Source of the DNA: Haliotis rubra
Taxonomy: Eukaryota
Direction of reading: 5' to 3'
DNA: 64,000 nucleotides
Assembly: GCF_003918875.1 (NCBI RefSeq)
Contig: NW_025766869.1
Location: 434,001 to 498,000 of the forward strand
The notes beneath the pieces are model-generated. The model did not search any database and was not told the origin of the DNA. It was given only the letters and a program-made list of their open reading frames with translations. Shown one piece after another: positions 145 through 32,201 of the stretch (position 1 is the first letter of the stretch; each line of letters starts with the position of its first letter). The position numbers were made by a program, and so were the translations under genes.

Positions 145-3100
145 CAGTGATTGTGCTGCCAACCATCTTGAGAGTGTCGTTCTTGAGGGTTTCGAGAAGA
201 CCTTTGCCCACAGTGGCGGCATATGGCACGAAGTCCGTTCCTGTCTGTTTGATAGCTCCTCCGATGGTGTTAAGGTCATCCTTCAGGCCGGTCAAGACGT
301 CCCTTTCTGAGCTACGATTAAAAACATACATGTAACTGTGGTTTTGCATTTGAAAGAGTGGTTCGATGCACCTCAGCATTATAAATTACGTTTTAGGGTG
401 CAATGAAGTGAATTTGGTCAATTTTCAGACATGAAACCTTTGAGCTACTCCCCAAATAGAGCAAGCACATTTTGTAGGCAAGCTTTAGGAATCAAATATC
501 ATGCATACTTACATATCTCTCTTGCCGTGGAATAGGTTTGCAAGTGCCTGACCAAGAAGATCTGAAAGAATAAAAGTGAACGGTATGTTTTTCCATTCAA
601 AGTTTACAAACGTCCCAGGTTGTACTCTTTACTTTACCGTTTGTAATGCTTACATGGACGTATTGACCCTTAAGTGTACATTGTGCTCATGTTCTATACC
701 TGTGAATGTGCCACTACGTTATAACAAACGCGCTTGTAAAGAACAGACGGATAAAACGAACACAGTTGTTTTTCCTCTCTTGGTCACCTGCTGCATTTTA
801 GTCGGATTGCATATGTACGGTTAGGAGGTGAGAAGACGTGAAATTGGGTTTAACGTCGTGCTTGAGAATATTTCGCTCATATGACGACGTGCATGCATGT
901 GTATGTGTATGTGCGGCTGCTTGTATTACCCCAGACTGAAGCTGGTTTTATAGTGCTAGCCCACTGAGATACCATGCCGCAGTGAAGCATGAATACCCCA
1001 CTCAGACACATTATACTGACTCCGAGCCGACCGGTCCTTGTTGTACCCATGAATGCCAAGCGCCAGACAGGGACCAACAAGCACCATATTTAACGTCTTT
1101 TGATTTGACGCGGTCGGGGAACCCGCGACCTGCCGCTCTCCGGGCGGACGCTCTAACCACTACACCACGGATGCGGTCCTCAAAATAGGGAAGTATACCC
1201 AACATAGTGTTCCCCATTGATGAATCAAATGTGTATGTGGTCTCCACATATCCTCTGCAACCTTGTGATAGCTTTCGACCATGTAATATACGTATGCAAC
1301 TTTTGAGTTCCGGAGGACCTCCAAAATTGTGAAATGTAGACAACAAAGGTTCGAATATTTAAGCCTAAAAATGAGTCTTGAAAAGTTTAATTCACATCTG
1401 AAATCTCCCAGGTGGTGTTCATTTTAACAGCGCACTGATTTTTCACGCGTGAGCTCACATGTGAAACAAACATGTTTCACTGGACGTTTTTATGCCTGTT
1501 TGAGATGGATAAATCAGTGGAAGGGAACTGGTCGTTTGACCATCACTGAAAGATATCAGATTATCAATAGACCGGAAGCCTAAGTTTGATTTCAAGGCAA
1601 GATTGCCTTAAATTTCACTTGAAATAGAATAGTATGGTAGACATGGAGTTGTTCAATGCAATTCTCTGCTTATGACTTCAGCTAATTGTATGGTCATGTG
1701 AAGCTAAATGTTCTTCGTAAGTGTTTGTTGTGGCGCCACAGTTTGATAGTGATTCGTAAATATATATGTAAACCATAGGCAAAATCGTGCAATGTGCCTT
1801 GCTTATAGCCGAGATCTGTGAATATGGACAGAGTTTTGCTGCTTTATTTACAGTAACGTATTGGTGTTTATGCACACAATTGTGTGGCTTATGTGAGTGG
1901 TTCATATGATTATGTCTTCAACGTCTAAGTGCACACTGTGTTGTGGCGTTCAAATAATTTCACCATTGCACATCTCACCGGTGATTGTGCCTCCAACCAT
2001 CTTGAGAGTGTCGTTCCCAAGAGTTCCCAGAAGCGGCAGTTGAAATGTGCATTATCGTTAGCTATTTTATAGTTAACATTAGCCGATACAATCAATGAAA
2101 GCGTTTCTTGGTATGTTCAGAGAGTATTTGGAAAAAGTGGAATTCTAAGTTTGTGAATTCAAAGAAAACCTCAAAGGAATTGCTTGGACGTTTGCAATCT
2201 TATAAAAAACAACGACTGACGTCAATGAATTTACGGTCTTAAACGTCTTCTTATCGTCTTTGTGTGCATTTCATCGAATCTTGAAATATTTCCGTCAACG
2301 TATATTTTACCACTCAGTGTTCCTCCCACCATCTTGAGAGTGTCGTTCTTAAGAGTTCCCAGAAGATCTTTGCCAATGCCTGCAGCATATGGTACGAAGT
2401 CCTTTCCTGTCTGTTGGACAGCACCACCGATGGTTTGCAGATCGTTCTTGATGTCCGTCAGGATATCCCTTTCTGAGCTACGAATTCATAATAATTCATA
2501 TGATCTGGTGCGGTATTTGTTAGGGTGTCTTTCTAAATGATCGCTCTAGGTATGTTAACAATATCCAGTGGGGGTCAAGGGGTGTGAATGGTATGTGCGC
2601 ATATCTGAAATGCAGCAGTGTAATTAAGTTTCATCAGATATTGAGACTGACAGCTCCTCCTTAGTAGAACATACACTTGGTACAATACACTTAAAGGTGG
2701 ATCACAATAAGTATAGGATATTGTGTATACTTACAGATCTCTCTTGCCATGGAATAATTGCCCAAAAACATCTGAAACAGAAGAATTTGTTTTGTTTTTG
2801 TGAAAAGTGTTTTTTCACTAGGTTTTCATAAATTATCTTCGTTGTGGTGTTCAAGGTAATGTTAGTATTATATACATCCGGTGTTAGTGAGGGTAAAGGG
2901 ATTAATGTGGTTATTATAATTGCATTGTTTAAATTGCATATATTACCATTGTTATCATTGTTCTAAGGACGGATCAGATGGAACTACACTAACCATCAAA
3001 GGTTTAGACTCACTAGTGTTAATGTAGCCACTTACTTCAGTCAACTGTTCTGAACTAGATTGTGCTAAATATTCCATACTGTTTAAAGGAACTGATGTAT

Positions 3101-6100
3101 TGTAAAACAAATTCGTAACGTTGAAAAGATTATTGTAATGAGTTCAATAAATGATGAAACTGGCTGAAAATTGGCGAATTCTTAACAAAACTTTACACCA
3201 AAACGCAGCTGTTTACATGCACGATACTAGTATTTGCATATGCTTTTCAACATTTTGATGCATAATTCTCGTGCAGTTCACCTGCATAAGGTTTGCATTT
3301 GGTTCCCACAAGTTAGTGGAAAAATTCATCTTCGATGTAACCACATGTATATACATAACATATAGTGAGTGCTTTAAGTGAGTCTAAACTTTTGATGGGT
3401 AGTATACTTTACTACAATGAAACACTGTTGTGTCATACTCTAATGTTGCGTCGACTGTACGGGTGTCTCGAAGTAAAAGCATGGCCCTTATATATTCCTT
3501 TTAAGTGATCATTTTGCGGATGAATGGATCCTAGAAAAAACCCAAGTATACTTCGAAGACAACTTCGATACAATATTGTTTGTCTGCATACTGACTTAAC
3601 CAAAACCCTAAGGGTTAGAAAATGTTTGATTTCAGAGTGGAACTAAGTTGAATTCTGTCAAATGTATCCCCTCTGAAAACCGCTATTCAATATAACAAAG
3701 GTAGCTAGTAACAAGCTACTGAGCATCTTTAAATATTATCTCCTGTCTTTCAGTAGTGTCGATATTTATTTTTTCAATCCTGAATCGTTATGCACAGGCC
3801 TGCATGTGAAACACTCGAGGCGATCTCACTGATCTTTACAGTGGGGCGGTGGGGTAGCCTAGTTGTCAAAGCGTTCGCTTGTCACGCCAAAGACGTGAGT
3901 TCCATTCCCCACATGAGGACAATGTGTAAAACCTATTTCTGGTGTCCCCCGCCGTGATATTGCTGGAGTATTGCTAAAAACAGCGTAAAACTAAACCCAC
4001 TCACTCACTCACTCACGCCTGTATTTTTGGCTTGGCAAATCTGTGGAAGGGAAATGGTCAAGTGTCCGTTGCTGACAGATATGAAAGCATGGTGTTGTGG
4101 TGTTGAAATATTATTGTGTGATAGGACATGATTTACCGCTGACTGTGCCTCCAACCATCTTGGCGGTGTCGGTCACGAGGGTTCCCAGGAAATCTTTGCC
4201 AATGCCTGCAGCAAATGGTATGAAGTCCTTTCCTGTTTGTATGACAGCACCACCGACGGCTTCAATGTCATTCTTGATGTCGATCAGAAGATTCCTTTCT
4301 GAGCTACGAGTTGACAAGAAATATTTGCTTTAGGATTCTGTTTGTTTTCTTTTCCTTTTCGTTGTTGATGGGTCTATTTATAATCTCTCAGAGTATGACA
4401 ACAGTATCAAGTGAAGGTGTATATTTGTATATTTTAGATGATAAGTAATTAGGTTATATCAGTCGTCGATATCTTTAAAGGTACTATTTCACACCACACT
4501 TCTCTAAAAATATATAATGCATTTCTCTCACTAATACTATCAGCCCTCAGAGAAACTACCATATGATATATTCCAAACAAATGTGTATTTAGATTACAAT
4601 ATTAAATTAAAAAGTTCGGATGACTATAATTATAATAATTTATATGATCTAATGCTGTGATTGTTAGGGTTCCTTTCTGAATGAACTCTCTAAGTGTATG
4701 AACAATATCCAGTGGGGGACTACGGGTGTGAATTGTGTGTGCTTATATCTGAAATACCGTAATTAAGTTTCATCAGGCAGTGACATTGACAACTGCTCCC
4801 TTAGTAGAACATACACTTGGTACAATACTCTTAAAGGTGAATCAGAATAAGTATAGGATATTGTGTATACTTACAGATCTCTCTTGCCATGGAATAATTT
4901 CGATAGAGCTTGCCCAAGAAGATCTGAAACAGAAGTGAAGGGGTTTTCGTGAAAATTGTTTTTGCCATAGTTTTCAATAAATTATCTTCGTTGTGGTGTT
5001 CACGTTAGAGTTAGTACTGTCTAAATTCCGGTGTTAGTGATGATAAAGGGATTACAGTGGTTATTATCATTGCATTGTTTATATTGCTGCTGTCTTGCAT
5101 ATATTACCATTGTTGTTATGCTACGGAAAGGCCAGGCCATATGGAACTAATATACTATAGTGGAACAATGTCGAGTCGGACTCGTATGTGTCGAATGTAG
5201 GGTTATCTCGAAGTGAAAGCTTGATCCCTGTACATTCCTTTTAATGACTAATTTGAGGCTCTGTCGAACCTACAAGACTTCAAAGTATTTACGTACGTAC
5301 CTTCACCTTTGATACAATATTGTTTGACTAAACCGAACCCGAAGGATTTGTTAGAATATGTTTAATTTCAGAATGGAATTAAGTTAAATTCTGTCAAATG
5401 TAGTCCCTATCCACCATGGACACCACTATTCCATATAACAAAACTAATGGAACAGTTTGATCCACTGGATATTGTAACTAAACGTGGATACCATAGATCT
5501 GAACAATGTCAGAAAATGTCACAAGCTACTGAGAATCTTTAAGTATTATCTCCTGTCTTTCAGTATTGTCAATATATACCTTATCACTCTAAATCGCTAT
5601 GCATAGGCCTGCATGAGAAACACTCGAGGCGATCTCACTGATCCTAGGACGAGAGCGGTGGGGTATCCTCGTTGTCAAAGCTGGGTACAATGTGTGAAGC
5701 TTTTTCCTGGATTCCCCCGCCGAGATATTGCTGGAATATTGCTAAAAGCGGTGTAAAACTAAACTTACTCAAACCTGTGTTTCTGGGTTGGTTTGTGTGT
5801 GGAAGGGAAAGGGCCATGTGTCCGTTGGTGACAGATATGAAAGCATGGTGTTGTGGTGTTGAAATAATATTGTGTGATTGGACATGATTTACCGCTGACT
5901 GTGCCTCCAACCATCTTGGCAGTGTCGTTCATGAGGGTTCCCAGGAGATCTTTGCCAATGCCTGCAGCAAATGGTACGAAGTCCTTTCCTGTTTCTTTGA
6001 AAGCACCACCGATGGTTTGCAAGTCATCCTTGATGTCGGTCAGAAGATTCCTTTCTGAGCTACGAGTTGATAAAATATTTGCTTTAGGATTCTGTTTGTT

Positions 6101-9100
6101 TTATTGTTTTGTTTATATATGGAAGAATCTCTCACAGTATGTCAGCAGTATCCAGTGATGATTAAGGAATGTCAGGTGTATGCTTGGATATCTGACATGA
6201 AAAGTTAAGTTATATCAATCGTCGATATTTGTAAATGCTTCCAAAGTAGACCCTATGCTGGATAGAATCAGGAGGTTGTAAATCAGGAGATTTAAAGGTG
6301 GATCATGATAAGTATGGGGTGTTGGGTAAACTTACAGATCTCTCTTGCCATGAAAAAGGTTTGCAAGAGCCTGACCAAGAAGATCTGAAACCAAGGAAAT
6401 CGCGGCAGTTGAAATGTGCTTTATCGTTAACTATTTTATTGTTACCATTAGCCGATACAATCAATGAAAGCGTTTCTTGTAATGTTCAGAGAGTATTTGG
6501 AAAAAGTGGAATCCTAAGTTTGTGAATTCAAAGAAAACCTCAAAGGAATTGCTTGGACGTTTGCAATCTTATAAAAACAACGACTGACGTCAATGAATTT
6601 ACGGTCTTAAACGACTTCTTATCGTCTTTGAGTGCATTTCATCGAATCTTAAAATATTTCCGTCAACGTATTTTTTACCACTCAGTGTTCCTCCAACCAT
6701 CTTGAGAGTGTCGTTCTTAAGAGTTCCCAGAAGATCATTGCCAATGCCTGCAGCAAATGGTACGAAGTCCTTTCCTGTCTGTTGGACAGCACCACCGATG
6801 GTTTGCAGGTCGTTCTTGATGTCAGTCAAGATATCCCTTTCTGATCTACGATTTGAAACAAAATGTATTTAATCTGGCATCTCTAAGTACGTGAATGATC
6901 TCAAGTGGGGACTAGGGGTGTGAATTGTATGTGCGTATATCTGAAATGCAGTAATTAAGATTTATTAGACATTGACATCAGCTCAGTTAATAGAACATAC
7001 ACTTGGCACTTAAAGGTGGATCACAATAAGCATCAGATATTGTGTATACTTACAGATCTCTCTTGCCATTGAATAATTTCGATAGAGCTTGCCCAAGAAG
7101 ATCTGAAAAGAAGTGGAGGAGTTTTCGTGAAATGTTTTTTATTCATTAGATTTTCAAAAATTATCTTCGTTGTGGTGTTCACGTTAATGTCAGTATTATC
7201 TACATTTCGGTGTTAGTGATGATAAAGGAATTAATGTGGTTATTATAATGGCATTGTCTATATTGCTGCTGTCTTGCATGTTTTACCATTGTTGTTATAC
7301 TCCTAAAAGGCGGCGTCTTATGGAACTAATATCCTATAGTGGAACACTGTTGAGTCGGACTCGTATGTGTCGATTGTACGGTTGTCTCGAAGTAAATGTT
7401 TGATCCCTGTACATTCCTTTTAGTTAACAGGCAGCTTGGGTTATCCGGGGTAATAATGGCCTTGATTGTTAGCGCTATGAGCATACCTAGTGTGGAGTTT
7501 GGCGCTATATAAATGGACACATTATTATTATTATTATTATTAATATTTTGAGGCTCTGTCGAACTTACAAGACTTCGAAGTATTTACGTACGTACCTTCA
7601 ACTTTGATACGATATTGTTTGACTGCATATTGGCTAAACCGAACACTAAGGATTTGTTAGAATATGTTTAATTTCAGAATGGAACTAAGTTAAATTCTGT
7701 CAAATTTAGTCATTATTCACACTGGACACCACTATTCCATAAAACAAAACTAATGGAACAGTTTGATCCACTGGATATTGTAAGAAAACGTGGATACCAT
7801 AGATCTGAACAATGTCAGAAACTGTTCTTATCTTTCCCCAACGGCGGCACCCGTCACAAGCTACTGAGAATCGTTATGTATTATCTCCTGTCTTTCAGTA
7901 TTGTCAATATTTACTTTTTCACTCTGAATCGGTATGCAGAGTCCTGCATGTGAAACACTCGAGGTAATCTCACTGGCACTACGAGGACACCGGTAGGGTA
8001 GCCTAATGGTCAAAGCGTTCGCTCGTTACGCCGAAGACCCGGGTTCGATTCCCACACGGGTAAAATGTGTGAAGCTCATTTCTGGTGTCTCCCATCGTGA
8101 TATTGCTGGAGTATTGCTAAACGCGGCGTAATACTAAACTCACTCACTCACGCCTCTATATCCGGGTTGGTAAATCTCCGGAAGTGAAATGGCCATATGT
8201 CCGTTGGTGACAGATATGAAAGCATGGTGTTGTGGTGTTGAAATAATATTGTATTATTGGACATGATTTACCGCTGACTGTGCCTCCAACCATCTTGGCA
8301 GTGTCGTTCATGAGGGTTCCCAGGAGATCTTTGCCAATGCCTGCAGCAAATGGCACGAAGTCCTTTCCTGTTTCTTTGAAAGCCCCGAGGATGGTCTGCA
8401 GGTCATTCTTGATGTCGGTCAGAAGATTCCTTTCTGAGCTACGAGTTGACAAGAAATATTTGCTTTGGGATTCTGTTTGTTTTGTTTTGTTTTATGTTGT
8501 TGTTGGGTTTGTTTATAATCTCTCAGAGTATGACAACAGTATCAAGTGAAGGTGTATGTTGGTATATTTTAGATGATAAGTAATTAGGTTATATCAGTCG
8601 TCGATATCTTTAAAGACACTATTTCACACCACACTTCTCTAAAAATATATAATGCATTTCTCTCACTAATACTATCAGCCCTCAGGGAAGCTACCATATA
8701 AATTATTCAAAACAAATGCGTATTTAGATTAGATATTAAATTAAAAAGTTCGAATGACTATAATGATAATAATTTAAATGAGCTGATGCTGTGTTTGTTA
8801 GGGTTCCTTTCTGAATGATCTCTCTAAGCATGTGAACAGTATCCAGTGGGGCACTACGGGTGTGAATTGTGTGTGCTCATATCTGAAATACCGTAATTAA
8901 TTTTCATCAGACAGTGACATTGACAACTGCTCACTTAGTAGAAGGTACACTTGGTGCAATACTCTTAAAGATGAATCACAATAAGTATAGGATATTGTGT
9001 ATACTTACAGGTCTCTCTTGCCATGGAATAATTTTGAAAGAGCTTGCCCAAGAAGATCTGAAACAAAAGTGGAAGGGGTTTCGTGAAAATTGTTTTCATA

Positions 9101-12100
9101 AATTATCTTCGTTGTGGTGTACAAGGTAGTGTTAGTGTTATCTACTTTCCGTTGTTAGTGATGATAAAGGGAGTAATGTAGCTATTATAATTGCATTGTT
9201 TATATTGCTGCTGTCTTGCATATATTACCATTGTTATTATGTTGCTAAACGGTTGGGTCATATGGAACTACTTTACTACAGTGAAACACCGATGTGTCGG
9301 ACTCTAATGTTGTGTCGACCGCGTGTTTGTCTCGAAGTACAAGTATGGCCCTTGTATATTCCTTTTTAGTGATGATTTAGCGGATGTGTGGATCCTAGAA
9401 TAACTCGAAGTATTTACCTACGTACCTTCAACCTCGATACAATATCGTTTGATTGCATATTGACTTAACCACATCCTAAGGATTTGTTAGAATATGTTTA
9501 ATTTTAGAGTGATACTAAGTTGAATTATGTCAAATGGATACACTCTGGACGCAAATATTCCATATAACAAAGCTAGCTAGACTCATGCTACTGAACATCT
9601 GTAAGTATTATCTCCTGTCTTTCAGTAGTGTCGATATTTACTGTTCCACTCTGTATTTCCGGGTTGGTAAATGTGTGGAAGGGAAAATGACCATTTGTCC
9701 GTTGGTGACAGATATCAGATGTTGTAGTGCTGAAATAATACTGTGTGATTGGACATGATTTACCGCTGACTGTGCCTCCAACCATCTTAACAGTGTCGTT
9801 CATGAGGGTTCCCAGGAGATCTTTGCCAATGCCTGCAGCAAATGGCACGAAGTCCTTTCCTGTTTCTTTGAAAGCCCCGCCGATGGTCTGCAGGTCATTC
9901 TTGATGTCGGTCAGAAGATTCCTTTCTGAGCTACGAGTTGACAAGAAATATTTGCTTTGGGATTCTGTTTGTTTTGTTTTGTTTTATGTTGTTGTTGGGT
10001 TAATTCATCAATCTCTCAGAGTATGACAACAGTATCAAGTGAAGGTGTATGTTGGTATAGTTTAGATGATAAGTAATTAGGTTATATCAGTCGTCGATAT
10101 CTTTAAAGACACTATTTCACACCACACTTCTCTAAAAATATATAATGCATTTCTCTCACTAATACTATCAGCCCTCAGGGAAGCTACCATATAAATTATT
10201 CAAAACAAATGCGTATTTAGATTAGATATTAAATTCAAAAGTTCGAATGACTATAATGATAATAATTTATATGATCTGATGCTGTGTTTGTTAGGGTTCC
10301 TTTCTGAATGATCTCTCTAAGCATGTGAACAGTATCCAGTGGGGCACTACGGGTGTGAATTGTGTGTGCTCATATCTGAAATACCGTAATTAATTTTCAT
10401 CAGACAGTGACATTGACAACTGCTCACTTAGTAGAAGGTACACTTGGTACAATACTCTTAAAGGTGAAACAGAATAAGTATAGGATATTGTGTATACTTA
10501 CAGGTCTCTCTTGCCATGGAATAATTTTGAAAGAGCTTGCCCAAGAAGATCTGAAACAAAAGTGGAAGGGGTTTCCGTGAAAATTGTTGTTTCATTATGT
10601 TTTCATAAATTATCTTCGTCGTGGTGTACAAGGTAGTGTTAGTATTATCTACTTTCCGGTGTTAGCGATGATAAAGGGATTAATGTGGTGTTTATATTGC
10701 TGCTGTCTTGCATATATCACCATTGTTATTATGTTGCTAAACGGCTGGGTCATATGGAACTACTTTACTACAGTGAAACACCGATGTGTCGGACTCTAAT
10801 GTTGTGTCGACCGCGCGTTTGTCTCGAAGTACAAGTATGGCCCTTGTTTATTCGTTTTTAGTGATGATTTAGCGGATGTGTGGATCCTAGAATAACTCGA
10901 AGTATTTACCTACGTACCTTCAACCTCGATACAATATTGTTTGATTGCATATTGACTTAACCACATCCTAAGGATTTGTTAGAATATGTTTAATTTTAGA
11001 GTGGAACTAAGTTGAATTATGTCAAATGGATACACTCTGGACGCAAATATTCCATATAACAAAGCTAGCTAGACCCATGCTACTGAACATCTTTAAGTAT
11101 TATCTCCTGTCTTTCAGTAGTGTCGATATTTACTGTTCCACTCTGAATCGTCCTGCATGTAAAACATTCGTGGCGATCTCACTGGTCCTTACGGGGGAAC
11201 GGCGGGGTGTAAGTGGTCGCTCGTCACGCCGAAGATCTGGGTTCGATTCCCCACATGGGTACAATGTGTAAAACGTATTTATTGTGCTCCCCGCCATGAT
11301 ATTGCTGGAGTATTGCTAAAACTAAACTCACTCACTCGCTCACTCACGCCTGTATTTCCGGGTTGGTAAATGTGTGGAAGGGAAAATGACCTTGTGTCCG
11401 TTGGTGACAGATATCAGATGTTGTAGTGCTGAAATAATACTGTGTGATTGGACATGATTTACCGCTGACTGTGCCTCCAACCATCTTAACAGTGTCGTTC
11501 ATGAGGGTTCCCAGGAGATCTTTGCCAATGCCTGCAGCAAATGGTACGAAGTCCTTTCCTGTTTCTTTGAAAGCACCACCGATGGTTTGCAAGTCATCCT
11601 TGATGTCGGTCAGAAGATTCCTTTCTGAGCTACGAGTTGATAAAAATATTTGCTTTAGGATTCTGTTTGTTTTATTGTTTTGTTTATATATGGAAGAATC
11701 TCTCACAGTATGTCAGCAGTATCCAATGAGGCTTAAGGAATGTCAGGTGTATGCTTGGATATCTGACATGAAAAGTTAAGTTATATCAATCGTCGATATT
11801 TGTAAATGCTTCCAAAGTAGACCCTATGCTGGATAGAATCAGGAGGTTGTAAGCCCAGAGGATTAAAGGTGGATCATGATAAGTATGGGATGTTGGGTAA
11901 ACTTACAGATCTCTCTTGCCATGAAACAGGTTTGCTAGAGCCTGACCAAGAAGATCTGAAACCGAAATGAATCACTGTAAATGTTAAACACCATTATCTT
12001 ACATAACAAACTTAAGAAACAGCTTCATCTTTGATCAATGGAGAACGCGTTGACTAAACGTGGAAATCATACATATTGTTACGATCTTTGGCATCAACGC

Positions 12101-15100
12101 TTCAGTACAATTTGTGATATATTAGCAAACAAGTGTAATAAAATATATTTGTGAAATGACGGACTTCCTGATGAAAAGCATCAGTGATTGTTTGTTCTTG
12201 GAAACCACACAACGCAGAGTTACAGGATCCATAAATAATCAAGTTTGCACCACACCACCAAGTGACTGAACTCGCTGTCAGCATCGATTGGCATATGCAG
12301 ACAAGCATCACCAAAGGAGCGAACCTGACCACGCAAGTTTGTTATTCACGTCGTACAACAAGGACAGGTTATTGTGAACCATTTCTAACAAGGATCTTCA
12401 ATGTTAGCATCTATGTAAACCCGGGACATACAACACATTTTTGCTGAAGTTAAAACTGCTTTGGTATTCGCTGCACATGCTCATTTTGATAATGAAACTT
12501 TTGACGCTTACATGGACGTTTGAATCATACTGCGTCTCTAGGTGCATTTTGTTTTCGTGGCATGTGAAATGTTTCCGTCAACGTATGTGTTTTACCAGTA
12601 AGTGTTCCTCCAACCATCTTGAGAGTGTCATTCTGAATAGTTCCCAGAAGATCTTTGCCGATGCCAGCAGCAAATGGTACGAAGTCCTTTCCTGTCTGTT
12701 GGACAGCACCACCGATGGTTTGCAGATCGTTCTTGATGTCCGTCAGGATGTCCCTTTCTGAGCTACGAGTTAAAGCAATATATATCTGGCCTTGTGTTTC
12801 CTTAGGTTCTTTCTCTTTTAATAGTAAAGGACAAGGGTAGTAGTACAACTAACATGCGTTGAGTACCTATTCTATCAGACATTGATTTGGTAACTGCTCC
12901 CTGTCCTGGGCAGACCATACATTTGGACACTAAAGTGTGGATCAGAATAAGTACCGCATTCTGTGTCATTCTTGATGTCGGTCAGAAGATTCCTTTCTGA
13001 GCTACGAGTTGATAAAAATATTTGCTTTAGGATTCTGTTTGTTTTATTGTTTTGTTTATATATGGAAGAATATCTCACAGTATGTCAGCAGTATCCAGTG
13101 GTGCTTAAGGAATGTCAGGTGTATGCTTGGATATCTGACATGAAAAGTTAACTTATATCAATCGTCGATATTAGTAAATGCTTCCAAAGTAGACCCTACA
13201 CTGGATAGAATCGGGAGGTTGTAGACCCGGAGTGAGTGAGTGAGTTTGGTTTTACGCCGCTTTTAGCAATATTCCAGCAATATCACGGCGGGGGACACCA
13301 GAAATGGGCTTAACACATTGTACCCATGTGGGGAATCGAACCCGGATCTCTGGCATGACGAGCGAACGCCTTAACCACTAGGCTTCCCCACCGCCCCTTG
13401 TAGCCCGGAGGATTAAAGGTGGATCGTGATAAGTATGGGATGTTTGGTAAACTTACAGATCTCTCTTGCCATGAAACAGGTTTGCAAGAGCCTGCCCAAG
13501 AAGATCTGAAACAAAAATGAACTGATGCAAAATAAAACAAGGTTTATTGTTAACATTTATGTTGTTCACGTTTATCTGTTATAACAACTACACTAGAGAT
13601 TACATAAGGTTTCTTGCGTATTTGTTACTGTGTAAATAACAAAAACAGTAATTCTACAAAATTCAGGGAATACAAAATATATTAAATAGAAATACAAAGT
13701 GACTGGTGCATTTTGTTGTCATTTGGCGTCATTTTCATATTTTATATGGTTCAGTCTTTGTTGTCTACTTTTCATTACTTTTGGGATAGATTCGAGTAGG
13801 CACATTTCGACGAAAATTCAAAACACGTCCTAAGGATCCTGGTCGAAAGTCGTTACAATATTCAAGGCCATGGAAAACTATCAAAAACAACCTTGCTATG
13901 TTCTGGTATTATGTATTTGTTCTGTGGTGTCTGTTCCTATATATTATTTATGATTTATGACACGATTTTGTCACTAACATTCATATGATCATTTTAATGA
14001 GTGAGCGTTAATAACATAATGTATTGTGCTGTTGTGGTGAAACTTCACTCAAATATTTGTGTTACCAGTGATTGTTCCTCCGACCATCTTGAGTGTGTCG
14101 TTCTCAAGAGTTCCCAGCAGATCTTTGCCAATGCCTGTAGCAAATGGTACGAAGTCCTTCCCTGTCTGTTTGATGGCACCACCAATAGTTTCCAAATCGT
14201 CCTTGATGCCGTTCAGGACATCCCTTTCTGTGCTGTGTCAAAAATGTACAACTGTACTTTGCTTTTCTTAAAAAGGTACTTTGTGGATTGCAACATTTAC
14301 ACCAATACGCATTTATGCTAGTGGATTGATGGCCAAATAGAAGTAACTTGGATTTCTGTCTGACATCAATCTTTTGAGCAACTTCCCAAATATATTTACA
14401 TGCGAAGTAATATTTCTTCATATATCATTGGAAATACGTTTTAGGCGTTGTGCGGCTGAAATGTTGAGTAATATGCTGTATATCAAACATTTCAACTGTT
14501 CCCAAATTAGCACCTATATCTGATGCAGTTAGAGGTGTGGAAACATGCATGTTATGTGATAGGGTGGATGATAATCTTAAGTGATAGACTACAGTCTGTA
14601 CATACACCGTATCTCTCTTGCCATTATGGAACAGTTTAGAAAGGGCCTGTCCAAGAAGATCTGCAAAAGAAATGAGTGAGTGAGTGAGTTGAGATTTACG
14701 CCGCACTCAGCAATATTCCAGCTATATGGCGGCGGTCTGTAAATATTCGAGTCTGGACCAGACAATCCAGTGATCAACAGCATGGGCATCGATCTGCGCA
14801 ATTGGGAACCAATGACATGTGTCAACCAAGTCAGCGAGACTGACCACCCGATCCCGTTAGTCGCCTCTTACGACAAGCATAGTTGCCTTTTGTGGCAAGC
14901 ATGGGTTGCTGAAGACCTATTCTACCCCTGATCTTCCAGGGTCCCAAAAGAAAAGAAATGCATGCAGTGAGTGCTGGCACTGAAATGAGTGAGTGAGTAA
15001 GTGAGTATGGTTTTAAGCCGGTTTTAGCAATATTCCAGCAATATCACGGCGGGGGACACCAGAAATGGGCATCACACATTGTACCCATGTGGGGATTCGA

Positions 15101-18100
15101 ACCCGGGTCTTCGGCGTGACGAGCGGACGCTTTAACCACTAGGCTACCACACCGCCCCGAAATTTATGTTGAAATTCATATTGTCGTGTGTGTAGAGTTC
15201 AGCTCAAGTATCATCTGTCGAGTGTTAAATATGAAGTGCTTATATGTCCTTAGTTGTAATCATAAGATTCATGTGCAGTGGTTTCTGCATTACCACTGTG
15301 GTATCACTACTGACATTGAAAAAGTACTGCTTACATTCCTACGCGGTGCTCAGAATGTGGTTGCAGTTATTACATTTAGAGGGTGGTGCTTACATATGTT
15401 TACGGTAAGGTTGAAGTAGTACTTATGTTTTTGTAACAGAGCTTAAAATACCTCTCTGGTGCTTACAGTGAGACTGCAGTGCTTACATTTATGTCGCAGT
15501 TTTTAAATATCACTGTGGTTCTTGTATTACTGGGTAACAGTACTTAATGAATGGCATTCATAAGTGTTACACGTAAGGAAGAGGGTTTTATGGTTGTCAG
15601 CTTCTTTATCATGAGGAACACAACGTTTCGGAGTATATCCTTACTCCTTACGTAATAATGCTTTGGCACCTTACTGTGCTTATATTGATGTTGATGATCT
15701 TACGATAACTGGGTTGGCACCTTACTGTGCTTATATTGATGTTGATGAGCTTACGATAACTGGGTAGGGCTTAAGTGTTACTATTATGCTTACATTTAAG
15801 TTACACTACCTACATTTTCGTTGCAGTGCTTACATTTACGTAAACGTTCTTGGCGGTGCCTGCTGTGAGGTGGGTGTAATTAAATATCTGCAGTAGTGCT
15901 TAAATACCCCAGTCGTGATTATCGCAAGTATGCAGTGCTTATATCTTCGTAAAAGTGTTTAAAAACCTTCACTTTGCTTACAGTGTCATAATAACGTTTA
16001 AATAACCCTGTGGTTTTCATCTTAGGCGAACGGTATTTACATTTACGCAGTAGTGCTTTAGTACTCTTACTATGCTTACAGTGAATATGCTGTGCTTACA
16101 TGTACGTAGTACTGGTTCAGTTTTCTGAATGTGCTTACATTTAAGTTGCAGTGCTACATTTAGGTAGTAGTGCTTACATACCTTTATGGTGCCTGTAGAG
16201 GTTGCCTCGTCACTATATGGCTGGAATAATGCCGATGTAACATAAAGCCCAACTCAACTGTAGAGGTTGTTGACATGACATGTGTAGTAACACTTTAAAA
16301 CCCTTGTGGTGCTTACAAAACGCATTGCTGATTATGCGTTTGTGCGCTCCTTGTGCTGTCGTAATGCTTAACGGATGGAGGCATGTGCATGTCTTACCCG
16401 AGATAGTGCCCTCGGTTATCATTTTGAGAGTGTCGTTCTTAAGGGTTTCGAGAAGGTCTTTGCCTACGCCGGCAGCAAATGGTACAAAGTCTTTTCCTGT
16501 CTCTTTCTTAGCTCCTCCGGTGGTTTGCAGGTCGTCCTTGAGACCGGACAAGGCATCCCTTTCTGTGCTGTGGGTTGATAAAATTATATATAACAATACT
16601 GTAATTTTATTTTTGACACAAGAAAATATTTGTGGATCCCAATATGTACACAGTTACGTTTTAAGGAGGATGAGTTGAGGGAATTGTAACAAGTTGCTGA
16701 GCTTTCTAAGCGACATCGAACCTTTGAACAAATCCCTAAGTTAGTCATGTGTTTTTTTCTTAAAGACTTTTTATGACGATGCGAACATATTCATTTTAGG
16801 GTGAGTTTGACTTTGAAATTTGTATTTTATCGTATATCGAACTTTTGAAACCACCTCAGTTGACGTATACCTAGGACCATCGGAAGGGTGGAAAGTCTAA
16901 TTCAAGTGACACAATATTGCCAGTACATACACCGTATCTCTCTTGCCAGTATGGAACAGTTTTGAAATAGCCTGTCCAAGAAGATCTGGAACAGAAAGAA
17001 CTGTTATGCGTGATGTGCTTTTGCTCTCAAATTTATGTTCAAATATATTGTCATGTATATAGTGTATATGTAAGGTTGTGCTTAATGTGCCTTGGATGTG
17101 CTTAATGTTGGTAGTGTACCTAACTGTTGTATTCCCGTGGAAGTGTTTAAATACCACCATGTGCTTATATCAAGGTTGCATTGCTTACATTTATCGTTGT
17201 ATCGCTTAAACACTTTGTTGATGTTTACATTGACGTTAGGGTGTAATTCATAAATACCATTTTGGTGCTTATATTGAGATCCAGTGCTTACATTTGAACA
17301 GTACGACTAAAATACCATGTTTGTGCTTAAAGTGATGTTACAGTGCTTACATTTACATGGTGTTGTTTAAATTCCCTACTAGTGTTTACATTAAGGTTGG
17401 AGTGCCTTATCTTACACAGTGCTTAGTGCTTAGATAGTATTGCCATTCAGGTGCCTGCAGAAGATAATGTGTTATCATTTTAGTGCTTATTTTGCCGTTG
17501 TGGTGCTTAGATAGTTTCATTCATGTGGTGGTGTGTAGTCCTGTGGATAGAGCTCATGTCACAATCAGTTGTGAACTTTAGCAACATTGGGCGCGGAGAG
17601 TCTTTGGATGGGTGACAGTGTTTGGCAGCTTGACTCCTGAGAGTTTCTAGGACTTCAGTCCTGCCCTACAACGAAGCACATGCGATACACGTGATCTCAC
17701 CTTAGGCAAGTGAGTTTGTTCAAATTTGCCTCTGTTCATCCAGCAGAAAATGGGTACCCGGTGAAATAAGTCGTGAGACTATAACCTTCTAGCGCCTAAC
17801 AGGCAGAATGAGTTATCCGGGTTAATAATGATCAGATTGTGCGCTTTGAGCAGGATACCTAGCATAGAAAAGGCGCTTTATAAATATCCTTATTCTCATT
17901 ATCATGTATGTGTCGTACCGGAGATTGTGTTCCCGACCATTTTGAGAGTGTCGTTCTTTAGGGTTCCGAGAAGGTCTTTGCCAACGGTCTGGGCATATGG
18001 TACGAAGTCCTTTCCTGTCTGTTTGATAGCTCCTCCGATGGTTTGGAGGTCATCCTTGAGGCCGGTCAAGACATCCTGTCCGAGGGCGACACTCAGCGTC

Positions 18101-18129
18101 AAGGCCAGTACCACTATGAAAACCTTCAT
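145..18129 (-). CDS. Secreted multi-copy peptide precursor (gene 1): signal peptide plus at least 12 tandem 72-aa modules, each encoded by an exon A/exon B pair; 3' end lies beyond the window start
   Basis: Exons in transcription order: A1 18129-17919 (MKVFIVVLALTLSVALG-QDVLTG..TIS), B1 16985-16931, A2 16567-16398, B2 14660-14606, A3 14232-14066, B3 13505-13457, A4 12762-12596, B4 11955-11907, A5 11629-11463, B5 10550-10502, A6 9930-9764, B6 9057-9009, A7 8438-8272, B7 7102-7054, A8 6845-6679, B8 6384-6336, A9 6059-5893, B9 4923-4875, A10 4303-4137, B10 2771-2735, A11 2477-2311, B11 561-513, A12 311-145. All have AG/GT borders. A is phase 2->1 and B phase 1->2; the splice gives 2590 nt (863 codons) with no stop. 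Module consensus: (L)SERDILTDIKNDLQTIGGAxKxTGKDFVPFAAGIGKDLLGTLKNDTLKMVGGTxS-DLLGQALSKLFHGKRD. Confidence 0.88.
836..1175 (-). mobile_element. tRNA-headed V-domain-like SINE (second copy ~27525-27812)
   Basis: tagtggttagagcgtccgcc head, then aaagacgttaaatatggtgcttgttgg..ggctcggagtcagtataatgtgtctgagtgg..gctagcactataaaa; two similar copies. Family assignment is from recall of molluscan V-SINEs. Confidence 0.7.
1979..2033 (-). pseudogene. Truncated exon A remnant (3' part only)
   Basis: LLGTLGNDTLKMVGGTIT with a G|gtgag donor but no acceptor; fused to the intron sequence cggcagttgaaatgtgc also seen at ~6403, just before exon B8. Confidence 0.8.
12955..13001 (-). pseudogene. Truncated exon A remnant (5' part only)
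   Basis: Intact acceptor plus SERNLLTDIKND, then fused to sequence matching the intron that normally follows exon B (gtggatcagaataagta). Confidence 0.8.
13233..13397 (-). mobile_element. tRNA-derived SINE family 1 (~170 bp), representative copy with TSD
   Basis: A/B-box head (ggggcggtggggtagcctagtggttaa..gggttcgattccc), tail gctggaatattgctaaaagcggcgtaaaac(tcac)n, TSD ttgtag(a)cccggag. Other copies at approx. 3843-4016, 5648-5770, 7984-8151, 11193-11347, 14986-15158, 25690-25830, 27217-27389, 31891-32042, 35107-35263, 36265-36405, 44520-44670, 47234-47402, 49514-49665, 51252-51418, 58709-58878, 63791-63919; many have 7-14 bp TSDs. Confidence 0.9.
17527..17900 (+). mobile_element. CORE-like SINE with L2-type 3' tail (5'-truncated copy at ~7423-7545)
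   Basis: ccttaggcaagtga..gcctc..aaatgggtacc core; tail tgtgcgctttgag..aaaggcgctttataaat. The 7423 copy is absent from the paralogous intron at ~5243. Confidence 0.65.
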
Positions 18130-25508: not shown

Positions 25509-28500
25509 TTACAGGGAACCAGCAAGCTGTTTGACAATGGTTTCACCAGCGTTTGCAGCAGTCTGGGCCATGCTGCTGAGGGCGGGCTTGGCGTTTTGTA
25601 GAGTCTGACCTGTAAAAGTGTAATAATGGAATCAGAAATAGGGTAAAATGTTCCTGGTGTATAACCTCAAATATACATCGTGGGTGTGATGGGCAATGGG
25701 GTAGCCTGGACCTGGGTTCGATTCCTCACATGGGTACAATGTGTGAAGCCCATGTCTGGTATCCCCGGTTGCGATATTGCTGGAATATTGCTGGAATATT
25801 GCTAAAGCGGTAAAACCGTATTCACTCACAATTGTGGTTGTGAAAGGTGATTAAATGCAATGCTTATTCATAACGTTGTGTTTTAATGAATCAAGGTTGG
25901 TCGTTAGGTTGCCACGACTTTCCTAAGCAGTGTCGGGATCATCTGAATTGTCAGCGTCAGGCAAACATTTTTGAGTCTTTTGTGAATGGCGGATGCTACT
26001 GGCAGCGCAGGACATGCCTACTTCTATCGCAAACACCTATGTCATCACGCTTTTTAAGTGATCCATTCATATAATTTTCTCAGCTATTTTTGCCTGTAGG
26101 CCAAACGGAGTCTGTTTCTGAGGATAGACAAGACTTGGTATACTTTTGCACTGACGCTCTATATCTAATACGACCCGATTGTGATTCTTCATCAGGAAAA
26201 TCACCATTTAACCTGAGGGCGTTTCTCCTCCAGTAATCTGGCACCACGTCACTGTAGTGAGTGAGTTTAGTTTTATGCCTTTATGCATATCCAAGACATG
26301 GCCCGTGAAGATCCGGTTTAGCATGAACCTTCAGTAACCCATGCTTGTCGCAAGAGGCGACTAACGGGATCGGGTGGTCAGGATCGCTGACTTGGTTGAC
26401 ACATGTCATCATATCCCAATTGCGCAGATCGATTGCTCATGCTGTTGATCACTGGATTGTCTGGTCCAGGCTCGATTATTTACAGACCGCCGCCATATAG
26501 CTGGAATATTGCTGAGCGCGGCGTAAAACTAAACTCACTCACATATCCACGACATAGGCTATCAACCTGGTCGTTGTAGTATTGCGAACGGAGTTGGACT
26601 AAACTGGTGCCAGGATGGGGTAACTCACTGAAGATGTCCTTCATAGCGTCTTTCATGGCGTTGATGGCGTTGGTGCCGTGTTGGGTGAGCTGACCGATCT
26701 GGGAGGAGAGAGCGACGACGTGGGGCTTCAGCTGTTCCCCGAGCTGGGAGATGGAGTCCTTGGCAGCGCTCAGGAGGCCATTAGCCGCGACGCTGATAGC
26801 AGATCCTGCTCCGTGGACCATCTGCAAACAAAACGTACATGAACCAGACACTGGGCGAGGAATCAACGTTCCTGGAGAGACTTTGGGGTCAAGCAAGAGG
26901 TATGTTCCCCATAGCACCAACTGTGCACCCCTTCGAGCTGAAAACCGTTCGGTTTACACATTTAAGCAAGGAGTGGGCACGCCAATGAGAACCAACCGTG
27001 CGAGCCTTCTTGCTGAAAACTGTTCGGTTTACATATTTGAGCAAGACACCGGCACGCCAATGAGCACCAACTTTGCACCCCTTCGTGCTAAACAATGTTA
27101 CACATTTAAGCAAGATGGAGACTTGTCCATGGGCTATGATTATGCTCGCCTTCTTCCTCATCATTGTTTCTGTACGTATACAATTATTTGCTTGAATTGG
27201 CAAAACCAAAACTAAGCGAGTGAGTGAGTGTGTTTAGTCTTACGCCGCTTTACGCAGTATTCCAGCAATATCACGGCGGGGGACACCAGAAATGGGCTTC
27301 ACACACTGTACCCATGTGGGGAATCGAACCCGGGTCTTCGTTGTGACGAGCGAACGTTTTAACCACTAGGTTACCGCTCCCAACGCCCCAAAACTAAGCA
27401 ATTTAGCCAAGAAGGTTCACTTAAACTTCATTTACGCGCCTAAACAATAAATAATAGTTTGAAATGATGTTGTTTTGATCGAATGATGCATAGGCTATCG
27501 ATAAGAGTCATCAGGAAAGGGTGAGGTGAGGTGAAATTGGGTTTAACGTGGTGCTTGAGAATATTTTGCTCATATGACGATGTGCATGCGTGTGTATGTG
27601 TATGTGCGGCTGCTTGTACTAGCCCAGACATAAGCTGGTTTTATAGTGCTAGCCACTGAGATTCCATGCCGCAGTGAAGCAAGAATACCCCACTCAGACA
27701 CTTTATACTGACTCCGAGCCGACCAGTCCTTGTTGTACTCATTAATGCCGAGCGCCCGGCAGGGACCAACACGTACCATATTTTAACGTCTTTTGGTATG
27801 ACGCGGCCGGGCATCAGGAAAGGGATTAAAATAGTACCCATAACCGAACCCCAGCCTCCGAGATAATGGGCGAACGTTACATCCACTTAGCTACCACTTA
27901 GCTACCCTTTCTTTGGGCTAACACTAGGACATGCGTCCTGACAAACCCGTGATGATTCTCTATAGAATTAGTCTTCAGCAACCCATGCTTGTCGTAAAAG
28001 GCGACTAACGGGATCGGGTGGTCAGACTCCCTGACTTGGTTGACACATGTGATCGTACCCCAACTGCGTAGATCGATGCTCGTGATGTCAATCACTGGAT
28101 TGTCTGACCAAGACTCGATTATTTACAGACCGACACCATGTAGCTAGAATATTGCGGTCCGGTCTCGTGCACGCACCCAAACATGAAAACACATACACGC
28201 ACGTCGCTGTGAACGTTGTCACTTCAACCACGTTTCCATCTCATACCTGTGAAACAGAATCAACGGCTGGCTTGAAGGCAGCTGCGATGGCGCTCCCCAG
28301 GGAGCTGAGGGTGTCGGTGACGACGTTACGCTTCTTCAAACTGAACACCGACTTCACGACTTTGGTTGTGTCTCTCTCCAGGGCTTGTAGGAACTCTTTA
28401 GACAGAGATGTGTGCTTGGCTGGGAACAGAAACCAGCAGGTCATCTACATAAAACAATAATGGTAAGTGCCAAGGAAGGTCAAAGCGTTTATCATGTAAC

Positions 28501-30864
28501 GGCCAGTGTCATCGACACGATTAATTCATTTAAGTTATAGTTAATCAATAATTATAATTAAATTTGGTATCAGATATGACCCCGACAAATCGGAAGTGAA
28601 AAGATTATTTTTCATTTGGAAATGGTTAAACCTTTATTAAACCATCCCTGTTATTCATGGAGCTGCCTCCTTTGTCTAGTCTGCACAGAAAGCGGAAGTG
28701 GTAGTGGTTCGATATTCAACCGCGTCATACCACGATATCGGGTACTTGATGTTACCCTGCCTGGCACATTTAGGGGATAAACGGACTGGTCAGCTTGGGT
28801 CAGTTTTGTGTGTCTGAGTAAGGTATCCTCGTCAATCAATCAGTCAAAATACTCAGTATATACCCGGCAACAGATTGCTGCTCAAAAGCGCTTTAGACCC
28901 GTGAAGATCCGTGTTAGAATTGATCTTCAGTAACCCATATGCTTGTCTTAAGAGGCAACTAACTACACAGATCGGATGGTCAAGCTCACTGACTTGGTTA
29001 ACACATGTCATCGTATCCCAATTGCGTAGATCGATGCTCATGCTGTTAAACACTGGATTGTCTGTTCTAGTTTATTTACAGAATTATTTATTGCTGGAAT
29101 ACTGCTGAGTGCGGCGTAAAACTAAACTCACTCACTCACTCAAAATCGCTTTGAATCATGGGAACTTATTAGTCCTTGAACAGCCGGGGTTTGAGCAGTG
29201 ATTTAAAAGTGTTTAGTTCATTTTTTTTAGTTCTCGTGGTAAATTATTCCCTGATGTTTTCATGTCCAGATGATTTTGCACAGGACTTGGATGTTAGAAG
29301 AAGATTTCGACCCCCTTACCGTGTTCGTAAAGGTTCATAGCCCTGAATGTAGACTGGGGCCTGGTATCTCAGTAAGCTGGCACTACAATACCGGCATTAG
29401 TTGGGGCTAGCAGGCACATACGCAAGCACACATACGCACGCACACATGTGCAGGCACGTCACTATATACATTGAGTAATCTTGACAGCCACCCGTTAACA
29501 TGACCTCTTTTCTCATTCTTTGTTTCTACCCGTGAAGGTCCGAGTTAGAATATTGATCTTCAGTAACCCATGCTTGTCGTAAGAGGCGACTAACGGGATC
29601 GGGTGGTCAGGCTTGCTGACTTGGTTGACACACGTCATCGGTTCCCAATTGCGCAGATCGATGCTCATGCTGTTGATGACTGGATTGTCTGGTCCAGACT
29701 CGATTATTTACAGACCGCCGCCATATAGCTTGAATATTGCTGAGTGCGGCGTAAAACTAAACTCACTCACTAACTCTTTTGTTTCATTTCAGGCATAGCA
29801 TGCCATTAGGGCGTGGAGTCATCAACTGCTATACGACCTTGACATATACCTCCTGGATTCAATCACGCTCAGATTTCACTCTGGCGCCTACAAGAAAATA
29901 TGAAACCTACCAAGAAGAGCCTCGACCTTTTTGAGAGCATCCTCGGGGTGAATCTGAAGGTTCTTCAGCTGGGTGTAGATGGTCTGGATCTCTGTGAACA
30001 CCTCGTCGATGACGTCAGAGAACTGGGAGGTGCCGACGTTGAGGAGGTTCTTCAGCTTGGATTCCAGAGTCTGCATTTGAGTCATGATCGCGCTGAAATG
30101 AAGTGAAGAAGTAAATATTTTAATGAATCTTCAAGGTATCTGGATCGGAATTGGTCCCCAACACTCTGACCTTGTCATGAGAAGGGGCCAGACAGGAACG
30201 GGTTGACTGTCACTGTGATTTGGTTGACGTCCTTGTACCTCGAATCGATATCAACCCCTGCCTTGTTCTGGGTTAGTTTCATTAATAAAATAGACCTGAC
30301 TATGAGTAAAATATAAATTTCAATAACCAGTTATCTGTATCGACGCCACTATTTCGCGTTCCTTTTTGTCTGGTGTGTCTTGGTAAAGGAGGGGGAGAGA
30401 AGGGAAGAGAGGAGAGGATGCAGACATAATTTAGAAATCATTCCCCCATGTCTAACACGACACAGTCAACTGTACACAGGCCACTTATTCACTCAGTATC
30501 TGTTGAAATTCTTCTTGTGTAGATTCAATACATTTGGATGAATGTATATCCTGATATATCAAAATACGTGTTTCATTATCAGTGCATATTTTGTATAGTT
30601 ATGCATTTATTACAAATGATAGCAATAATAACAGATTTGTTTAGTTTTTGACTTACGGCATGTCTCTTTGATGATGAAACAGTGATGCAAACGCCTTGCC
30701 AATCAGATCTGGAATCACAGACAACAGAATATAACCGATCCCGACGTTGGAAACACGTGTTTACACCTGGATTTACACCTGGACAAAAACGTTAAGAACC
30801 GATATTTATTTATCTATACTTTTACTGGACGTTCGTGTACGAGTTTACATTGATTCACTTTAAG

Positions 30865-30900
<36 letters not shown>

Positions 30901-31816: not shown

Positions 31817-32201
31817 GTCTGTTGAGAGATTCAGGACAATTTATTAAAAATATGAGCATATGTCATCATCAGAGGTAATCCAAGAAAACTGTGAGTTTGG
31901 TTTTATACCGCTTTTAGCAATATTCCAGCAATATCACAGCGGGGGGGGACACAGAAATCTACACATTGTACTCATGTAGGGAACCGAACCCGGGTCGTCA
32001 GAGTGACGAGCGAACGCTTTAACCACTAGGCTACTCCTCCGCTTAAATACTTGGAATGCTATTAATATGTACTGGACATAAAAGAAAATTACCCACCCTG
32101 ACTTATATTTAAGCTTAAATAGCGTGAAATAAAAGTATCAACCAGATTTTGGACTGAGGAGATTATTTTAACTTTAGTAAATTCCACTTTCCCTGATCCA
32201 A

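Follow-up and report, generated by a model that had tools for sequence, protein, structure and literature searches.

How does an animal gene come to encode the same protein module a dozen times over, and what becomes of the copies once the protein is made? The question is raised by a locus of the blacklip abalone Haliotis rubra, which we analysed in a window of 64,000 nucleotides (RefSeq contig NW_025766869.1, positions 434,001 to 498,000). Between positions 18129 and 145 of this window, on the minus strand, a two-exon module is repeated in a single reading frame, and each complete copy ends in Gly-Lys-Arg (G-K-R). The gene is LOC124281015, already modelled in RefSeq as an "uncharacterized protein" without functional annotation; its 17 RefSeq isoforms are 872-1016 aa long and differ by whole 72-aa modules. 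We favour the reading that the modules are released from a secreted polyprotein by cleavage at G-K-R, with amidation likely, and would give it a probability of about 0.55; judged from its sequence, the array fits the release of 11 amidated peptides.

The first coding exon (17919..18129, minus strand) opens with an ATG at 18129 and starts with MKVFIVVLALTLSVALG, a 17-aa signal peptide with a hydrophobic core, Ala at -3 and Gly at -1, called by rule at MKVFIVVLALTLSVALG|QD. After the signal peptide the exon reads on as QDVLTGLKDDLQTIGGAIKQTGKDFVPYAQTVGKDLLGTLKNDTLKMVGNTIS, the A part of module 1 (QDVLTGLKDDL...GNTIS plus one nucleotide). Within the window, 12 A exons and 11 B exons alternate. 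The A exons of the eleven-exon downstream set are 167 nt long, except for A2 with 170 nt, and are in phase 1+3n+1; the B exons are 49 nt long, except for B1 and B2 with 55 nt and B10 with 37 nt, the latter shortened by an in-frame deletion of 12 nt (4 aa), and are in phase 2+3n+2. An A and a B exon together make 216 nt, or 72 codons, and the phases are compatible at all junctions. All exons have AG acceptors behind pyrimidine tracts, and the donors are of the GTAAGT-, GTATGT- or GTAAAx-type. Across the splice junctions the module consensus is (S/T)ER | D/N-x-L...GGT(V/L/I)(S/T)-D-LLGQAL(S/A)(K/N)LFH-G-K-R-D-(L/I) | SER. When the 23 exons are joined, they give a single stop-free frame of 863-865 aa, which corresponds to residues 1-865 of RefSeq XP_046572980 (P0017, isoform X1) with 0 mismatches if A2 is started 6 nt upstream. 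An earlier interpretation made from the letters of the window, here called the sequence-only reading, had proposed a 17-aa signal peptide followed by at least 12 repeats of a two-exon 72-aa module, and on both points it was right (865/865 residues match RefSeq).

Downstream of the first coding exon, and on the same strand, the modules follow one another as B1 (16931..16985, 55 nt, encoding (D)LLGQAISKLFHT-GKR-DT(V)), A2 (16398..16567, 170 nt, counted from a canonical AG acceptor; RefSeq start 16573), B2 (14606..14660, 55 nt, LFHN-GKR-DT(V)), A3 (14066..14232, 167 nt), B3 (13457..13505, 49 nt, LFH-GKR-D(L)), A4 (12596..12762), B4 (11907..11955), A5 (11463..11629), B5 (10502..10550), A6 (9764..9930), B6 (9009..9057), A7 (8272..8438) and B7 (7054..7102, LFN-GKR). 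Module 8, which is skipped in isoform X5, consists of A8 (6679..6845) and B8 (6336..6384), and is followed by A9 (5893..6059) and B9 (4875..4923). The most divergent module is the tenth, with A10 at 4137..4303, where the NDT sequon is changed to TDT, and the shortened B10 at 2735..2771, encoding (D)VFGQLFH-GKR-D(L). A11 (2311..2477), B11 (513..561, LFH-GKR-D(I)) and A12 (145..311), the final exon of the window, end the series. Two truncated A-exon relics have been left in introns: the 5' 40 nt of an A exon at 12962..13001, with the acceptor intact, ending after ...IKND and absent from the RefSeq isoforms retrieved, and the 3' part of another (LLGTLGNDTLKMVGGTIT) at 1980..2033, with a GTGAG donor, inside the intron between A11 and B11.

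G-K-R is the signal for convertase cleavage, carboxypeptidase trimming and amidation, and a basic residue at P4, P6 or P8 is the established rule for cleavage at a single basic residue. In the window, every one of the 11 B exons codes for LF(H/N)(T/N)?-G-K-R-D, and the spacers read across the splice are DLSER (eight times), DISER (once) and DTVTER (twice). We extended the comparison to 34 distinct full-length modules of four Haliotis species. Their boundary reads GKR in 29 modules, RKR preceded by Gly in one, FKR in three and GKS in one. K-R is kept in 33/34 (11/11 copies in the window), Gly precedes the basic pair in 30/34 (11/11 in the window), and the residue after the pair (P1') is Asp or Glu in all 34. 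The spacers of 32 internal modules end in ER (24), KR (4), QR (1), KK (1), or EE or KD (2), with a terminal Arg in 29 of the 32. Relative to the spacer Arg, there is Arg at P6 with DLSER and Lys at P8 with DTVTER, in agreement with the monobasic rule, and a cut after this Arg would expose an N-terminus, D/N-[VIL]-L, that lines up with the residue following the signal peptide plus one Gln. The protein carries the signal peptide, the dibasic K-R and the Gly before the pair that together mark a multi-copy amidated precursor. The G-K-R end and spacer on each complete copy, the basic residue at P6 or P8 and the register of the N-termini had all been claimed from the window, and all withstand this comparison.

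If the sites are used, a prohormone convertase would cut after each K-R in cells of the regulated secretory pathway, and an enzyme of the carboxypeptidase E type would trim the K and R. Peptidylglycine alpha-amidating monooxygenase would then convert the exposed Gly into a C-terminal amide, giving LFH-NH2 (or Thr-, Asn- and Asn-amide in modules 1, 2 and 7), and DLSER or DTVTER would be removed by a further cut, behind the spacer Arg (E-R; basic residue at P6 or P8). The outcome would be eleven Cys-free, Gly-rich peptides of 60-66 aa. Each would contain three amphipathic helices and would probably be N-glycosylated at N-D-T. Module 12 and a helical domain would be left as a larger C-terminal product, which may be split at F-K-R.

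The predicted peptides have masses of 6.2-7.0 kDa as amides, a net charge (K+R-D-E) of 0 to -4 and a calculated pI of 4.5-6.8; they contain no Cys and 14% Gly, and they end in His-amide outside modules 1, 2 and 7. The sequence-only reading had described them as Cys-free and near-neutral to acidic, which agrees with these values. The N-D-T N-glycosylation sequon is kept in 32/34 modules of the four species as well as in the paralogues described below (e.g. 11505-11497, module 5). If it is used, the products would be glycopeptides, and mass-spectrometric searches must allow for that.

Another element of the early description, a helix-Pro-helix shape, is not what AlphaFold predicts: in its model of a two-module segment each module has three helices (residues 2-19, 28-43 and 51-64) and GKRDLSER falls in coil, at a very low mean pLDDT of 33 that restricts the model to secondary structure. 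The ESM Atlas model is of equally low confidence. Helices 1 and 3 have hydrophobic moments (muH) of 0.46 and 0.42, compared with 0.21 +/- 0.11 and 0.19 +/- 0.09 for shuffled sequences, of which about 1% score as high. The amphipathicity of helix 2 is weaker. The moment peaks at 90-100 degrees per residue. The maximum hydrophobic moment in 18-residue windows of the whole peptide is marginal against shuffles (6%), a less clear result than that for the single helices.

What kind of gene could have given rise to such an array is suggested by its 3' end and by a neighbour. The sequence-only reading needs correction here: the array is not complete in the window, and the gene carries on past window position 1. 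There RefSeq has a twelfth B exon, B12, encoding LFH-F-K-R-D-T-P (LFHFKRDTP) with no Gly, and after it the exons of a helical C-terminal domain of about 130 residues (NLVQQSQAFMSELKNLLDLGTSQFSDVIDEVF...). This tail aligns over its length with the middle of a single-module paralogue, and the H. rubra copy of that paralogue lies within the window, on the same strand as the polyprotein gene, from 31816 to ~25515. Its first coding exon (31606..31816, minus strand) encodes a signal peptide and a single A-type module. A 52-nt B-type exon (30657..30708) encodes (D)LIGKAFASLFHHQRDMP, with no Gly and no dibasic site, and the exons of the C-terminal helical domain are spread over 25515..30121 (tblastn high-scoring segment pairs at ~30121-29906, 28420-28240, 26830-26624 and 25607-25515). 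At the module boundary the paralogue has LFH-H-Q-R-D in H. rubra and H. asinina and LFH-I-K-R-D in H. rufescens and H. cracherodii, never Gly.

Because the tail is homologous to the single-module paralogue, the polyprotein is a paralogue-type gene with an amplified N-terminal module. It appears to have arisen by an approximately twelve-fold amplification of the two-exon N-terminal module of a helical secreted protein, and the neighbouring paralogue still has the single-module form. Gly before K-R is found in internal modules; in terminal modules and paralogues its place is taken by F, I or H. The Gly-Lys-Arg boundary is thus restricted to the internal copies.

Some details of the two gene models may be noted here. 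RefSeq starts A2 at 16573, after a non-canonical AC (a GT...AC intron), which gives GKRDTVHSTER in all isoforms retrieved; the canonical AG 6 nt downstream (start 16567) gives GKRDTVTER. A boundary of the latter type is also found in module 2, and the orthologues from H. asinina, H. rufescens and H. cracherodii have DTITER and DTLTER. In isoform X3 (P0025), the GQD of exon 1 is joined to sequence upstream of A2 with no canonical sites. These non-canonical junctions may be template-switching or mapping artefacts in repeats. On the minus strand, a pyrimidine tract and CAG stand a few bases upstream of the ATG both in the polyprotein gene (18139-18150, with the candidate acceptor ttgttactacag 10 nt upstream of the ATG) and in the paralogue (31818-31830), which suggests an untranslated upstream exon in each, so that the "first" coding exon would really be exon 2. 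The spacer codons C-TCA-GAA-AGG-GAC at the start of internal A exons (e.g. 311-299) align, with a 1-nt indel, with CTC-GGA-CAG-GAT at 18114-18103; the "SER" of the spacer may come from the same nucleotides as the "LGQ" of the signal peptide, read in another frame, in a stretch too short to count as evidence. Starting about 730 bp upstream of the polyprotein ATG, at 18857-19958, there is a 32-bp minisatellite of ~34 copies (96-bp higher-order unit, 88% identity). Intron 1 of the paralogue contains a microsatellite derived from (ATC/CAT)n together with 22-37-bp repeats (30867-31331), and runs of N at 30987-31162 and 31332-31462.

The array is old, is still turning over and is, by the measures that follow, under purifying selection at the protein level. 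The median dN/dS between A exons is 0.22 (Nei-Gojobori, pairwise, over 53 shared codons, 62 pairs with dS > 0.1), with dS values as high as 1.0-1.5 where modules 1-3 are compared with the others. The introns flanking modules 1-3 and 12 have no blastn similarity to any other intron, while the exons of these modules are still 65-85% identical in protein. Among the introns of modules 4-11 similarity is 70-98%, and its pattern points to segmental duplications of several modules at once. A maximum-likelihood tree of the 34 modules and three paralogue modules, built on 73 columns and leaving many forks open, joins modules of H. rubra and H. asinina as positional orthologues (the two first modules, the two last ones, A10 and asinina 9, A11 and asinina 8) and also shows bursts confined to one lineage, for instance H. 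rubra modules 5-7 and 9. The positional orthologues retain the cleavage sites. A degenerate 43-aa module common to H. rufescens, H. cracherodii and H. asinina has lost its site (GKI, KKK). It is from dN/dS, intron divergence, the exon relics and the module tree together that age, turnover and selection are concluded; dN/dS, the intact frame and the conservation across species also rule out a pseudogene or chance open reading frames.

Several observations weigh against release of the modules as amidated peptides. Amidated peptides of 64 aa are unusual, and the confidence of the two-module model is, as said, very low. The conserved N-D-T sequon would suit a glycoprotein as well as a peptide. The G, K and R columns do not stand clearly above the conservation of the module as a whole (mean column identity ~80%), and internal modules descend from one founder, so that the presence of Gly amounts to one event plus retention. 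At the nucleotide level, an 11-nt purine-rich run that encodes G-K-R-D, GGCAAGAGAGA (e.g. 13471-13461), is base-identical in 11/11 B exons, and Gly, Gln, Leu, Phe and His codons only a few bases from it vary synonymously within H. rubra. The run lies 3-9 nt from the donor of the 49-nt exon; it could be an exonic splicing enhancer that holds GKR for a non-proteolytic reason, and the conservation of GKR within H. rubra may in part come from such an enhancer or from gene conversion. In the ancestral-type paralogue and at the end of the array, the module belongs to a larger helical protein and its site is HQR, IKR or FKR, devoid of Gly, so it can work without being released, and the polyprotein has retained the C-terminal domain of the paralogue type. 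Finally, five conserved motifs have no match in the supplements of the H. laevigata shell-matrix proteome (nacre and prismatic layers; 28 files, 6.2 million characters), and neither the H. asinina mantle secretome supplements nor those of the H. discus hannai ganglia transcriptome and peptidome contain the conserved motifs. The overall interpretation offered by the sequence-only reading is upheld by the gene structure, the signal peptide, the register, the G-K-R sites and the charge, and is weakened by the paralogue, the retained tail, the invariance of GGCAAGAGAGA and the sequon.

Among the rival explanations, the one that survives best, and that we hold possible but doubtful, is a secreted protein that works intact or lightly trimmed, as an amphipathic repeat protein of the apolipoprotein, LEA or surface-coat kind. 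The K-R pairs would stay unused in cells without neuroendocrine convertases, Gly would serve as a helix C-cap, and the GKR codons would be held in place by the splicing enhancer. This explanation accommodates the paralogue and the terminal module, in which the module is fused to a helical domain of ~200 aa and devoid of a G-K-R site, the invariance of the purine-rich GGCAAGAGAGA and the sequon in each module; besides, K-R without Arg at P4 is no furin site. It is also favoured by the direction in which similarity signals point. The nearest language-model neighbours of the first exon are clusters of ApoC-I, ApoC-II, ApoC-III and ApoA-II (0.83-0.71); those of the paralogue are a rotifer cluster (0.86), then apoLp-III, type-4 ice-structuring protein and ApoA-I (0.70-0.59); and the mature peptide is placed next to a rotifer mate-recognition repeat protein (0.82), a surface protein made of repeats. 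All of these scores are below 0.9, and the neighbours are leads only. The model of the paralogue (pLDDT 61, long helices) was compared by Foldseek with AlphaFold DB clusters, the best matches being LEA proteins and ApoEb, at TM 0.31-0.45 and of the generic long-helix sort. Weak sub-threshold Pfam matches to Apolipoprotein, ApoLp-III and Gp-FAR-1 go the same way. These pointers agree on a secreted protein of amphipathic helices, poorly ordered in isolation, without placing it in any family.

What argues against an intact protein is, first, that these signals all fall under the reliability marks of the tools (atlas < 0.9, TM < 0.5, Pfam bits far below the cut-offs). Second, Gly-Lys-Arg and an acidic spacer ending in Arg or Lys are kept at nearly every internal boundary in four species; the boundary variants observed (KR, KK, RKR) remain cleavable, and Gly is present only where another module follows.

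Cleavage at the basic sites without amidation, or with heterogeneous ends, by a furin-like or extracellular protease that would leave Gly-extended or ragged helical units, is improbable in our estimate. The basic sites are indeed conserved, the terminal F-K-R cannot yield an amide, and the long helical units resemble those of lipid-binding polyproteins, namely nematode antigens; yet Gly stands before the dibasic pair in 30/34 modules, and R-X-X-R, the furin consensus, is missing from the sites. A precursor of neuropeptides or hormones, with products acting on receptors, can be all but dismissed. In formal terms the gene is built like the multi-copy precursors of amidated neuropeptides, but the products would be amphipathic helices of 60-66 aa and not short ligands, the module is also a domain of a helical protein of 285-303 aa, the motifs are absent from the ganglia supplements of H. 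discus hannai, and the family is limited to one genus.

To delimit the family, we aligned the 12 A exons, searched the resulting profile against 1.84 billion representative proteins and named the relatives by cluster look-ups and a word-based search. The profile search yielded three true relatives: a protein of 742 aa matched over 11 stretches, one of 285 aa matched over a single stretch, and a genomic fragment of 75 aa from a Logan assembly. None of the true relatives among these proteins comes from outside Haliotis; other matches, to TPR, repeat and low-complexity proteins, are spurious. Orthologues of the polyprotein occur in H. rufescens (LOC124112657), H. cracherodii (786 aa) and H. asinina (944 aa, XP_067668589, P0015; 11 modules and a helical tail), and H. 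rufescens, H. cracherodii and H. asinina also have the single-module paralogue of 285-303 aa. The RefSeq name of the H. asinina protein, "trimeric autotransporter adhesin AtaA-like", is an artefact of automatic naming on a repeat protein.

A Pfam scan of the modules, the polyprotein and the paralogue gave no family at its cut-off, only sub-threshold or repeat-inflated matches that agree on no consistent family; those to CHD1-like_C, Mu Gam and the like on protein P0002, with 0-3 passing stretches, are weak matches summed over repeats. PDB sequence profiles gave nothing below E = 0.1, and neither the LOC and XP identifiers nor the eleven peptide strings are mentioned in the literature searched. 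Identity with HGAP ("haliotid growth-associated peptide") is ruled out, since that is a 96-aa Cys-rich protein, and assignment to the shell-matrix proteins of Haliotis was set aside, on the negative evidence of motifs absent from the proteome supplements. As far as the databases searched indicate, the family is confined to Haliotis and uncharacterised; that the family had not been recognised from the window was justified, its only relatives being Haliotis models named "uncharacterized protein", with no Pfam, PDB or characterised relative.

Two further repeats in the window lie away from both genes. At 39004-41278, two tandem arrays adjoin each other, one of 40-bp units (~20 copies, higher order 120 bp) and one of 44-bp units (~19 copies), with the common core CACTCCAGACTATTGGG. 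At 46090-46251 there is a short array of 26-33-bp units with TTAGGG-like, telomere-type motifs in an internal position.

Several known systems resemble the abalone protein in part. Multi-copy precursors of amidated peptides, for example of the FMRFamide type, occur in molluscs and other animals and give products of 4-15 aa. They share with the abalone gene the signal peptide, the tandem copies each ending in Gly-Lys-Arg, the short acidic spacer and the predicted processing by convertase, carboxypeptidase and amidating monooxygenase. The abalone protein differs in that its products would be 60-66 aa long, anionic and helical, each copy is split over two exons and amplified at the level of exons, and a large helical C-terminal domain is kept; there is no sequence relationship.

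The complex precursors of spider venoms, such as those of cupiennins and latarcins, also yield many amphipathic helical peptides from one transcript, separated by short anionic linkers (PMC7889660, PMC8290080). The C-terminal end of the spider linker is a processing quadruplet motif (PQM), with Arg at -1 and Glu at -2 to -4 (PMC7889660), which LSER, ISER and VTER fit, formally only. The spider peptides are cationic and ~20-35 aa long, and their linkers, of 11-13 aa, carry an inverted motif, in which Glu comes within three residues after Arg (PMC7889660, PMC8290080); the abalone linker, in contrast, starts as RDLS, with Asp and not Glu, and thus fails the inverted motif, and the net charge of the peptides is 0 to -4. 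The spider precursors belong to an arthropod venom gland and have no homology to the abalone polyprotein.

With exchangeable apolipoproteins and LEA proteins (ApoA-I/ApoE, PF01442; apoLp-III, PF07464; ApoC-I, PF04691) the abalone protein shares secretion, the lack of Cys and amphipathic helices that are poorly ordered in isolation. The likeness is at the level of class, with no 11- or 22-mer repeat shown in the abalone protein. The paralogue scores 20 bits against PF01442 (cut-off 90) and 15.6 against PF07464 (cut-off 36.3), well short of membership, and the modules have no match to PF01442, PF07464 or PF04691.

Nematode polyprotein allergens or antigens of the ABA-1 type consist of units of ~130 aa that fold as four-helix bundles and are cut at R-x-K/R-R, with no amidation. 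They too are tandem helical units made as a polyprotein with evenly spaced basic sites, and the ABA-1 products are small lipid-binding proteins; there is no homology to the abalone polyprotein (no Pfam match). Human dermcidin gives rise to DCD-1L, from a single-copy mammalian precursor, without amidation and with epithelial secretion; as a lead only, DCD-1L is alike in being a secreted, Gly/Lys/Asp-rich, net-negative amphipathic helical peptide of ~50-60 aa.

The released peptides would most likely act on lipid or membrane surfaces. They may serve in mucosal or haemolymph defence, as other anionic amphipathic peptides do, or bind lipids like exchangeable apolipoproteins. We would propose, tentatively and at somewhat less than even odds, an abalone-specific class of long, anionic, amidated and possibly N-glycosylated three-helix peptides, made from an exon-amplified polyprotein that descends from a secreted ancestor like the apolipoproteins or LEA proteins.

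If the peptides are released, they would form a new molluscan peptide family, whose size, charge and copy number are unlike those of known neuropeptides or cationic antimicrobial peptides; the processing mechanism would be a variant of a well-known one, and the peptide class would be new. If the protein stays intact, it may represent the first secreted protein family of exchangeable-apolipoprotein-like or LEA-like character to be described from a mollusc. Abalones are farmed, and their mucosal and haemolymph defence (Vibrio, herpesvirus, withering syndrome) matters economically. The birth of a polyprotein precursor can be followed cleanly at this natural locus, with three stages side by side in 64 kb: a single-module gene of the parent type, an array of old and young modules, and truncated exon relics. 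Should the abalone-specific peptide class proposed above be real, it would be a lineage-specific family of secreted effector peptides, serving in mucosal defence or as surface-active or lipid-carrying agents, whose birth can be read in the neighbouring single-module gene.

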